From contig RBZT01000960.1 in assembly GCA_003693705.1 (NCBI GenBank), forward strand, positions 1 to 33,630: DNA of 33,630 nt, read 5' to 3'. Of this stretch, positions 15,720 through 19,236 are shown piece after piece (positions within the stretch are counted from its first letter, which is position 1; the number at the start of each line of letters is the position of its first letter). The notes under the pieces were generated by a model. It did not search any database and was not told where the DNA came from. It saw nothing but the letters and a program-made list of their open reading frames with translations. The translations under genes and the position numbers were made by a program. This DNA comes from Polymyxa betae A26-41 (Eukaryota > Protista > Endomyxa: Phytomyxea).

Positions 15720-16700
15720 CAGTGTCGGACCAAGAACCGCCTCGCTTATCTCGTTAGTTGTTAAGAGTATAGAGGGGATTGGTTATTGTGTATAATACAG
15801 TGTTGCAAGATCACTTTATCTCTGTATATTGCTGTCCAAACAGCGTACCATATCAGATTCCATGAATATGGAGAAACTTGAATGATGACGCTGTAACCTG
15901 ATTGGTTGTTAACAGCATTTGCAGAGTTTCAATACATAACGATCTACAATATTGCATGGCACATCAAATTGATCTAGTTCGAAGCTCGAATACTTGTTGA
16001 AGAACATGCAGAGATGTTATAGCTGTCTTCACTGTCTATCTGGGTATCTGTTGAGCATATGATCACAATTTGATTGTTTATGGATTTAGATCTTCATATT
16101 CAACATCATCAAAGTACATATCTGATGCACCAACAAGGCATTTCTCCAATGCTTGTTGATAATTCCATTGGACATGTTCAAACTCGTTCTTGTTCATTCG
16201 TTTCTGATCGTTGCCCTGGGTTGAATCTCGTTTCCGCTTAGATCTTGGCGATGACGTCTTGGTTGAAGCGATCTGGACTCCTGCTTGTGATTGTTGTGGA
16301 TATGATCCAATAACAACTGGATATTGTTCTGTTGGTGTGTTTATGTTCATCACTGACTGATTCGGACACAATTCTCAATTTCAAAGTGACTTGATTGAAG
16401 GTCATGGCCACATTAACTTGAACATAATTGCAATGAGTTGACTCAATACCGACCTGATCATTGACTACATATTCATTCATTAGTAGATTGATCGAGATAG
16501 TTCAGCATAACCTAACATTGCTCTGACTTAACAACTGGACTATTATGATGAGATTTAGATTTAAGATGTTTTGAAAGGAATTCCCGAATAGCCTTCTTTG
16601 CATCGCGAACTAATCCAGGGGTATATCTGCTGTTGCTCGATGATTCGTATTGACTACAAATATGTTCTGAATATGAATAACAGAATAGTAACACCGACTT
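15720..16700 (-). pseudogene. Probable decayed gene of unknown family
   Basis: Overlapping minus-strand ORF fragments in different frames (16512-16694, 16238-16480, 16078-16371 with KRKR). Downstream exon-like stretches contain in-frame TAG/TGA/TAA that I could not remove with canonical introns. Confidence 0.35.
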
Positions 16701-17385: not shown

Positions 17386-19236
17386 ATGGCTCGCTTGGCT
17401 GTTTTCGCTAGTGCTGTTCTTGGCCTTGGTGCTTTTACTGAGGCCAGACAGAAGGCTGCTAATGAAGTTCATGCTCTATCCAAGGATATGGGCGAATCCC
17501 TATCGAACATTGCTGGACGATTCCTCTCCAAATCGGAGATCGAAGCTCTTGTGACGTTATCATCACCCAAAGATGTGTTCATCAATGAGATCGATCAGCT
17601 GCAGAAGGAGATTATCAAAGAATGCCATGCTGAGACTGACACCTTCAACGAATGGCTTCAATCGAAGCAAAACGATCTTTACAACAACAATCTCCAGCTG
17701 AGCTCTCTTCAAGGACATCTTTCTGATGTTCAGAACACGATTGCACAACTTCAGGGACAATTAACTGGAGCTCAAGAAGATCAAGGAAATCTTCAACAAC
17801 AACTTGAGGGAGCTCAAAACGACCTGTTATCGTACCAGCAACAACTCCAAGACGCCATTGAAGAACGTCAGAAGACTCATGATCAGAACGAAGCTATCAT
17901 CAAACAACATCACGACTCTCTTGCTGTTCTTCAAGGTCTTCGTGATCTCGTTGCTAACTTTGATGTCAACAAGAACGATGTCATGAGCAAGCAGCTTGCC
18001 AAAGTTCCCAAAGTGAACCGCCTTCACAAGCATGCCTCCAAGATCAATGCTTTGATCACCTCGGTTAAAGAGAAGATCGCTAAAGCCCTGACCAAAGATC
18101 CTCAAGAGAAGGCCAGGATCAAGGACAACCTGTTGAAAATGATTGATGGAGTTATGGCCGGTGTTCAAGATTCTCTGAACTTGTATCAATCTCAGGAAGA
18201 CGCTCTTCAACAGAAGTTCGACAATGAAGTGAAGCCAGGCTTGGAACAGATGATCTCTCAAACTCAGGATCACATTGGTGCTCTTCAGACTGAGATTGGT
18301 CAAGTTGTTGGAGATATTGGCTCTATTCAGAGCGATCTTGACCAAGCTAATGATGATCTCGATCAGACTCAAAGCCAGATCTCCACCCTTGAAGGTCTCA
18401 TTCAATCATTACAGGATCAGATCCAACAAGGCATTGATGCTCACAACGACAAACAGTCCAAGTGCAAGGCTGATCTGGATGCTCTTGAAGAGATTCGTCA
18501 ATACGTTGTCGCTAATGTTCATGGTGCTACTCCTGGTAACAACTGTAATCCAGAATCACCAACATGTCCACGATGTCTTTATGATGGTCACTGCTCTCAA
18601 GGTCAAATCTGTACAGATGATGGTGTCTGTGGTGTTCCTCCCACTACTGCTCCTCCTCAACCACAATCATACTCAGCCTTGATCACCGATGTTGTTGGTC
18701 CTCAGCAAGGTCGTCGTGTTGATGCTGGTGTCGTCTCTCAGACTTCTTTTTCCAATGGCGATTACACCTATATCTTCAAGTACCAGCAGCTATCAAACGC
18801 TGATGGATGGGGTAACCTGTTCAACGTTGTTCCAACTCAACCTGGATGGCCCTTCCCTAACCAAGCTGCTCTGTTCCTTACTGGCAACATGTTCGAGATT
18901 GATGTCTGTGATGGTTCAAAGCCATGGAGTGAGAGCTACTGGTACCGTAACTTCTATCTTGATCAGGTCGAACTCGGTCAATGGAACGCCATCGCTTTCA
19001 TCGTCAGCGGCTCAACCAGATCCGTTACCTTCGTTCATCGCAACAGCGCTGGAAAGATCAAGAGCCAGAGCTGGGCTGATTATCATGGAACTGTTCAACA
19101 ATTCCCAGAAACCGGAATCTATGTTAACGGTCGCGATTACAACAATCTCAACTCTAACTTTGATGACTTCCGTCGTTACGAGCGTGCTTTGGGCGAGAAT
19201 GAGGTCGAATCCGTGTTCAACGAGTTCTTCGCTTGA
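17386..19236 (+). CDS. Secreted 616-aa protein: signal peptide, two acidic/Gln-rich coiled coils split by a basic linker, a 6-Cys module, a P/T linker and a C-terminal LamG/concanavalin-A-like domain; intronless
   Basis: Clean long ORF with strong codon bias (aag, aac, atc, ttc, gct, ggt). Heptad repeats; CNPESPTCPRCLYDGHCSQGQICTDDGVC; the ending NFDDFRRYERALGENEV matches the LamG3 'IDEVRIYNRALS..EI' pattern. Confidence 0.9.
   Translation: MARLAVFASAVLGLGAFTEARQKAANEVHALSKDMGESLSNIAGRFLSKSEIEALVTLSSPKDVFINEIDQLQKEIIKECHAETDTFNEWLQSKQNDLYNNNLQLSSLQGHLSDVQNTIAQLQGQLTGAQEDQGNLQQQLEGAQNDLLSYQQQLQDAIEERQKTHDQNEAIIKQHHDSLAVLQGLRDLVANFDVNKNDVMSKQLAKVPKVNRLHKHASKINALITSVKEKIAKALTKDPQEKARIKDNLLKMIDGVMAGVQDSLNLYQSQEDALQQKFDNEVKPGLEQMISQTQDHIGALQTEIGQVVGDIGSIQSDLDQANDDLDQTQSQISTLEGLIQSLQDQIQQGIDAHNDKQSKCKADLDALEEIRQYVVANVHGATPGNNCNPESPTCPRCLYDGHCSQGQICTDDGVCGVPPTTAPPQPQSYSALITDVVGPQQGRRVDAGVVSQTSFSNGDYTYIFKYQQLSNADGWGNLFNVVPTQPGWPFPNQAALFLTGNMFEIDVCDGSKPWSESYWYRNFYLDQVELGQWNAIAFIVSGSTRSVTFVHRNSAGKIKSQSWADYHGTVQQFPETGIYVNGRDYNNLNSNFDDFRRYERALGENEVESVFNEFFA

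Follow-up and report, generated by a model that had tools for sequence, protein, structure and literature searches.

Gene and module layout

The window, i.e. the whole stretch of DNA analysed here, comprises 33,630 nt of contig RBZT01000960.1 of the plasmodiophorid Polymyxa betae A26-41 (assembly GCA_003693705.1, positions 1 to 33,630 of the forward strand). At positions 17386-19236 on the plus strand it carries a single intronless open reading frame (ORF) of 616 codons, with the stop codon at 19234-19236. The product is a modular rod-and-head protein, with secretion predicted from a signal-peptide-like N-terminus, and its rod very probably belongs to the T1-F superfamily (PF27870), judging from profile alignments. 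The T1-F family includes the trichocyst matrix proteins (TMPs) of ciliates. The modules are as follows (aa, amino acid positions of the protein; AF2, AlphaFold2 model; pLDDT, its per-residue confidence; pI, isoelectric point).

17386..19236 (+): complete intronless coding sequence (CDS), one ORF with a matching root-metatranscriptome contig
17386..17445 (+): signal peptide, aa 1-20, read by eye (MAR, a 14-residue hydrophobic core, TEA before RQ)
17446..17568 (+): conserved N-terminal segment, aa 21-61, short AF2 helices, aligning with the start of the T1-F unit
17569..17955 (+): helix 1 of the T1-F-type hairpin, aa 62-190, acidic (pI 4.4), with Cys80; AF2 pLDDT 75-95
17956..18099 (+): loop or linker, aa 191-238, basic in the window paralogue (pI ~10.2); break of low pLDDT with a short helix at 217-234
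18100..18516 (+): helix 2 of the hairpin, aa 239-377, acidic, with Cys360; AF2 pLDDT up to 95
18517..18630 (+): 6-Cys module, aa 378-415, its Cys invariant across the family
18631..18705 (+): Pro/Thr-rich hinge, aa 416-440, from composition and pLDDT <50
18706..19233 (+): laminin G (LamG)/concanavalin A (ConA)-like lectin-fold head, aa 441-616, from Pfam matches of homologues, an AF2 beta sandwich and fold comparisons

An earlier note on this DNA, made from the sequence alone, had placed the feature at 17386-18525. That span covers only the first 380 of the 616 residues (62% of the gene) and misses the 6-Cys module and the lectin head. Within it, the note's reading of the N-terminal half was largely accurate. 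A signal-peptide-like N-terminus is present, as judged from the sequence without a predictor, and all paralogues have an equivalent one. The short pro-like region described behind it corresponds to the aa 21-61 segment, which is conserved among paralogues (L31, L55, L58, P61 and K62 are invariant in the four compared). The precursor of about 40 kDa with two acidic, heptad-rich regions is likewise recovered, since aa 21-380 amount to ~40 kDa and both helices are acidic. In the 6-Cys module, the six Cys together with G380, L398 and G413 are invariant in 7 of 7 aligned family members, and no Pfam family scored above cut-off. A cytoskeletal or otherwise intracellular coiled coil was also considered for this gene product, and was ruled out by the signal peptide, the Cys module and the presence of lectin heads.

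Fold and internal repeat of the rod

The two rod halves, rod 1 (aa 60-195) and rod 2 (aa 246-380), have pI values of 4.40 and 4.10, and the linker between them (aa 196-245) one of 10.4. The AF2 model, computed from an alignment of four paralogues, contains two long helices at residues 62-190 and 239-377 with pLDDT up to 95, so that the two acidic coiled-coil regions proposed previously are well borne out. Foldseek matched the rod model to antiparallel coiled-coil hairpins (dynein stalk, Rad50, MukB/Smc, MCP/chemoreceptors). Because these are intramolecular hairpins, the rod is best read as a predicted antiparallel two-helix hairpin of ~19 nm, with residues 191-238 as its loop. The rod model held by the database itself (Atlas) matches MCP hairpins and a diatom protein with a template-modelling (TM) score of 0.55; a fold search with the whole 616-residue model gave TM <0.2, which is meaningless.

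The suggestion that the two halves are internal repeats was substantiated. When rod 1 and rod 2 were aligned as family profiles with hhalign, a probability of 94.7% (score 49.6, 128 columns) was obtained, whereas reversed rod 2 scored 28.5 and none of 30 heptad-block shuffles exceeded 36.3; the plain pairwise score corresponds to z = 5.4. On this sequence evidence the halves are related beyond heptad bias. The description of the linker as sharply basic applies to the window protein (pI 10.4) but not to the family: loop pI is ~10.2 in the window protein and 8.3, 10.4, 4.05, 8.4, 10.9 and 4.2 in six other members, i.e. it ranges from 4.05 to 10.9. Cys80 and Cys360 are both present only in the window protein and in its LamG-type paralogue on contig C45 (L002). 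Their register (80+360 = 440, compared with 62+377 = 439 for the helix ends) is such that the two residues would face each other in the predicted hairpin, and a bond between them would hold the helices together if the loop were cut.

Relationship to trichocyst matrix proteins

A profile built from seven plasmodiophorid rods (A2) was searched against 5.8 billion proteins and gave 14 matches at E <=1, of which 11 carry PF27870 (best E-values 2e-8, 2e-7 and 9e-7). The PF27870-bearing matches are two-unit proteins, and the rod aligns with either unit: hhalign of A2 against the C-terminal T1-F unit of marine proteins gave 96.2% (E 2.3e-9) over 306 collinear columns, and against the N-terminal unit 94.5% (E 7.9e-8) over 297 columns. 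Anchor segments follow one another in the same order in rod and T1-F units, namely the start of helix 1, the end of helix 1, the start of helix 2 and a terminal R..(D/E)(L/I)(D/E)AL..A motif; identity is about 15%. The real hhalign score of 79.3 compares with 25-29 for reversed profiles, at most 28.5 for heptad-block shuffles and at most 46.7 for 28-column shuffles. Similarly, a hidden Markov model (HMM) of A2 gave a median of 27.8 bits on 131 T1-F proteins and -5.7 on their reversed versions. In the opposite direction, a T1-F HMM scored 9 of 9 plasmodiophorid proteins above all reversals, weakly but in a direction-specific manner, with the window protein best at 20.4 bits. Since the reversed and shuffled controls fall to background, the similarity is not one of composition or heptad periodicity. 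What was found is thus a register-specific, collinear alignment that beats its controls, and not the generic coiled-coil hits alone that the earlier note had named as the outcome speaking against its proposal.

Two further lines of evidence agree with this assignment. Precomputed Pfam matches place T1-F together with SUEL_Lectin on P0001, the nearest relative (E <=1e-5), and weakly on P0002. In a feature search based on a protein language model (Atlas, aa 21-425), clusters of ciliate "Trichocyst matrix protein" of 359-368 aa carrying PF27870 ranked first. Residues ~21-380 would accordingly constitute one T1-F unit. Other searches were less informative. A single-sequence word-index search with the window protein found no matches, and a Pfam scan returned only sub-threshold generic coiled-coil families, which is uninformative as its model set is without PF27870. 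PDB sequences, searched with profiles A2 and A4 (the latter built from marine T1-F proteins) as well as with the protein itself, gave only short generic coiled-coil matches, up to 74 residues with A2, and no solved relative. An A4 search for named ciliate TMP or Grl proteins brought up only unnamed marine sequences among the 120 of 2392 matches listed.

The protein resembles ciliate TMPs (PF27870) in being a predicted secreted protein with one unit of ~360 residues and two long acidic helices around a central loop, and in a profile-level homology that survives controls. It differs from them in its additional 6-Cys module, hinge and lectin head, in its variable loop charge, in its ~15% identity, and in coming from Rhizaria rather than Alveolata. 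The TMP/Grl-like architecture proposed previously therefore stands as regards T1-F homology beyond coiled-coil bias, but not as regards the basic linker, which is not conserved. The Grl proteins of Tetrahymena are described as acidic, Ca2+-binding, proteolytically processed lattice proteins of dense-core granules (PMC2133959). They are of a kind with TMPs and without a lectin head, and are likened to the window protein by description only.

Outside the plasmodiophorid family, the best rod relatives by sequence are the marine two-unit T1-F proteins (P0038-P0171; Ciliophora and Bacillariophyta clusters). They have the same order of anchor motifs and paired Cys near the open end of the unit, but differ in having two tandem units, a poly-Pro loop, no Cys knot and no lectin head. 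The marine proteins examined (A3, A4, A5; P0038-P0047) are tandem duplications of one hairpin unit. Each unit has a Cys near the beginning of helix 1 and another towards the end of helix 2, and the poly-Pro motif lies in the loop. They have at least 2392 relatives in marine metatranscriptomes, none functionally named among the matches listed. P0038-like proteins fall in Atlas clusters that bear the name "Trichocyst matrix protein T1-F domain-containing protein" and have ciliates and diatoms as known taxa, so that an occurrence outside ciliates, as proposed in the earlier note, is not in itself new.

A plasmodiophorid family with interchangeable heads

The P. betae assembly searched (27.09 Mb, 1001 contigs) corresponds to the published draft of 1,001 contigs and 27,085,946 bp (PMC6328671). 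It contains at least five full paralogues, the window gene included, and one fragment. Those outside the window are listed here.

C45 (L002:1477-3312): 611 aa, 54% identity to the window protein, LamG-like head
C675 (L003): 499 aa, SUEL lectin head (54.5 bits, cut-off 31.4)
C263: 418 aa, rod and Cys module only
C966 (L010:1321-2460, L011): rod ORF of 379 aa, Cys module ~70 nt downstream in another frame
C432 (L009:1498-1743): fragment, 81-aa ORF, 76 residues of it identical to the C-terminal end of the C263 protein (rod end and 6-Cys module)

The change of frame between rod and Cys module on C966 suggests a short intron or a frameshift, and the C432 fragment represents either a duplicated piece of a gene or redundancy in the assembly. 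Searched exhaustively with phmmer, 1.84 billion representative proteins yielded only 15 matches. The true relatives among them are the environmental plasmodiophorid-like proteins P0001 and P0002 and PBRA_002083 of Plasmodiophora brassicae, the nearest named relative of the window protein; the other matches are bacterial coiled coils of a generic kind. The rod, the six invariant Cys and SUEL heads recur in each of these three relatives. PBRA_002083 (SPQ93242.1, "SUEL-type lectin domain-containing protein") is 23% identical to the window protein over aa 23-415 (E 4.8e-14). It has the rod and 6-Cys module in common with it and differs in its head of 3-5 tandem SUEL repeats and its acidic loop (pI 4.2). 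Its only mention in the literature searched is as a Gal-lectin, in a supplementary list. Rod and Cys module thus form the conserved core of the family, and the head is interchangeable (LamG-like, SUEL repeats or none).

The P. brassicae orthologue is on record at 504, 715, 815 and 915 aa (P0003, P0017, P0018 and P0019). These entries differ in the number of SUEL repeats, which reflects either variation in repeat copy number between isolates or a difference in assembly or annotation.

The lectin head

Five of six aligned homologues of the head match Laminin_G_3 (PF13385), with a best E-value of 7.1e-11; at 16.6 bits, the window protein itself falls short of the cut-off of 27.6. The AF2 model of the head is a beta sandwich or jelly roll (predicted TM score 0.65). 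In VIA-align it matches the CBM40 domain of the NanB sialidase (Z 15.3), the LamG-like module of PAPP-A (Z 15.1) and the pentraxin domain of PTX3 (Z 14.6). A further fold match reaches Z 14.8, and fold matches overall have Z 13-15 and a root-mean-square deviation of ~3 A over 150-175 residues. Foldseek gave E ~5e-7 to lectin-like jelly rolls or subdomains of several proteins. The head thus shares the predicted jelly-roll fold of the Laminin_G_3/ConA-like superfamily (CBM40, pentraxin, LamG), yet scores below the Pfam cut-off, and it is assigned to the ConA-like lectin superfamily on its modelled structure, at the level of fold only and with no ligand implied. Neither a SUEL domain (PF02140) nor a C-type lectin domain was found in the window protein by the Pfam scan.

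Foldseek matches to neurotoxin binding domains raised the question of a toxin relationship, which was rejected because the shared part is only the common ConA-like jelly roll that LamG domains, pentraxins and CBM40 contain as well. Tandem repeats of the LamG-like head with no rod attached occur in the metagenome proteins P0005 and P0021, and in the metagenome fragment P0009 the head directly follows the Cys module. As it is seen without the rod and in other contexts, it is a mobile module in related organisms.

Expression and codon usage

A root-metatranscriptome contig of 1805 nt spans positions 17402-19206 of the window with 0 differences and is free of joints; the genes on either side were not assembled. 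Given this gapless exact match, the gene is transcribed, unspliced, as the ORF predicts. In four root metatranscriptome runs of one study, 70-97% of the sampled words of the gene were present, and in rhizosphere metatranscriptomes of another study 13-27%; the raw-read RNA runs X19 and X20 contained no reads of P. betae. That the ORF is intact, matched by RNA contigs and conserved in paralogues rules out a pseudogene or artefact.

The effective number of codons (ENC) is 44.8, compared with 43.8 for actin/tubulin genes, and relative synonymous codon usage correlates with that of actin/tubulin genes at r = 0.63, compared with 0.06-0.28 for neighbouring genes in the window. The strong codon bias perceived earlier is thus moderate in degree, though in the same direction as that of actin/tubulin genes.

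The C45 paralogue forms a sharp GC island, with a gene GC content of 0.60-0.62 between flanks of 0.45-0.50, a GC content at third codon positions (GC3) of 0.83 and an ENC of 34.5. The GC3 of the window gene is 0.44, so that these close paralogues have very different codon usage. Elsewhere in the window, positions 16183-16337 exactly match a root-metatranscriptome contig of 155 nt; this stretch, which has been read as a decayed gene next to the 3' end of UBA1, is thus represented in RNA libraries.

Proposed role and alternatives

The sequence described from plasmodiophorid zoospores to host entry involves the Rohr, the Stachel and the adhesorium, a projectile apparatus for which no components are known to have been described (PMC4815078). 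Gal-lectins are enriched in plasmodiophorids (PMC4471660), and treating root surfaces with trypsin or PNGase F lowers the attachment of Spongospora zoospores (PMC9944879). Against this background, the reading that we favour, by a modest balance of probability, is that of a secreted T1-F rod with a lectin head, serving matrix storage and glycan anchoring. If ciliate T1-F proteins are taken as the model, the rod probably self-assembles into a condensed secretory matrix kept in vesicles. Processing may take place in the loop, in which case the Cys80-Cys360 pair would keep the helices joined after the cut. Once the matrix is discharged, glycan binding by the head would fix it to a surface. Encystment, attachment and penetration of zoospores on root hairs (cyst coat, adhesorium or Rohr/Stachel apparatus) would be the most plausible setting, and the main alternative site would be the spore wall or the sporosorus matrix. 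The protein is a concrete candidate for the attachment or penetration material of the parasite, and its putative lectin head speaks for adhesion through glycans more than for the core of a projectile.

Several observations weigh against this reading. As to homology, the window protein alone, aligned by hhalign without the family profile, reached 61% (E 8e-5). The ciliate TMP clusters that headed the feature search scored 0.85 (192-196 of 256 features), which is below the 0.9 bar of the tool and counts as a lead only. The P. brassicae orthologue has no T1-F match on record. When A4 and A5, profiles of marine T1-F proteins, were run reciprocally against the P. betae genome, the gene was missed, and only one candidate each got past a first look. 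T1-F membership of the window protein was judged from profiles built for this analysis and from the precomputed matches of its kin, even the bona fide T1-F protein P0038 having gone unmatched in the Pfam set used; kinship with TMPs was judged via T1-F-bearing proteins. As to function, T1-F proteins are found in diatoms, which to our knowledge have no trichocysts or extrusomes, so that homology alone does not imply an extrusome protein. The basic loop, the presumptive processing site, is not conserved in the family, being acidic in the C263 paralogue and in P. brassicae (pI 4.2). Finally, the RNA runs were selected for containing the window gene and derive from bulk infected roots in which life stages are not separated.

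Some of the same observations would also be expected of a constitutively secreted oligomeric lectin, an agglutinin or wall protein whose rod is a stalk or oligomerisation device, with no lattice, regulated discharge or processing, and which would end up in the resting-spore wall, in the sporosorus matrix or at the parasite-host interface. The heads have lectin folds, T1-F proteins occur in organisms without extrusomes, the loop is unconserved, and most of the biomass in the infected roots that yielded the transcripts consists of plasmodia, zoosporangia and sporosori. We nevertheless consider this explanation rather unlikely. The rod and the Cys module persist in two paralogues that lack a head, and the rod therefore has a function independent of the head; it is a specific T1-F unit and not a generic coiled coil; and the predicted long intramolecular antiparallel hairpin is unlike the short parallel-trimer necks that join the C-type lectin domains of collectin-type lectins.

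An improbable alternative, closest to what the earlier note had in mind, is that the protein would help to build the Rohr/Stachel projectile itself as a structural subunit, in a lattice that expands with Ca2+ like the trichocyst shaft. Such a role would agree with the T1-F homology, with the conservation of the family between P. betae and P. brassicae and with the existence of a projectile apparatus in plasmodiophorids. A glycan-binding head on a flexible hinge, however, would be more at home in an adhesive coat than in a rigid bullet, the T1-F family extends to organisms without extrusomes, and the processing linker is unconserved.

Convergence between acidic, Gln/Glu-rich secreted hairpins of like length with no shared ancestry is very unlikely: the identity of only ~15%, the single-sequence probability, the negative reciprocal genome searches and the known inflation of profile scores by coiled-coil proteins would fit it, but it is opposed by the order-dependent, end-to-end collinear alignment with two different T1-F units, by the fall of reversed and heptad-shuffled controls to background, by the independent match of P0001 to a curated model, by the independent language-model ranking, and by the fact that the same profile found only short generic matches in the PDB.

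Implications for plasmodiophorid biology

Plasmodiophorids cause clubroot and powdery scab and transmit the rhizomania virus, and we know of no molecules identified as those by which their zoospores attach to and pierce root hairs. The family described here offers candidates that are named and expressed, and a logic open to testing, in which a putatively self-assembling rod bears a putative glycan-binding head. The T1-F domain itself is already known; what is new is its lectin-tipped variant in a new lineage, which extends the domain to Rhizaria in a fused architecture. In the literature searched, no link between trichocyst matrix and plasmodiophorids was found. The finding also bears on the origin of extrusome-matrix proteins, and on whether these derive from an older family of secreted hairpins common to stramenopiles, alveolates and rhizarians (SAR). 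It is tempting to speculate that plasmodiophorids store a trichocyst-type condensed lattice of lectin-tipped T1-F rods, discharged at encystment to form the adhesorium or Rohr/Stachel, and that matrix proteins are an ancestral SAR toolkit reused for host invasion; we regard this broader scenario as improbable. If the stored-lattice reading were true, molecular components of the infection apparatus of plasmodiophorids would have been identified for the first time.

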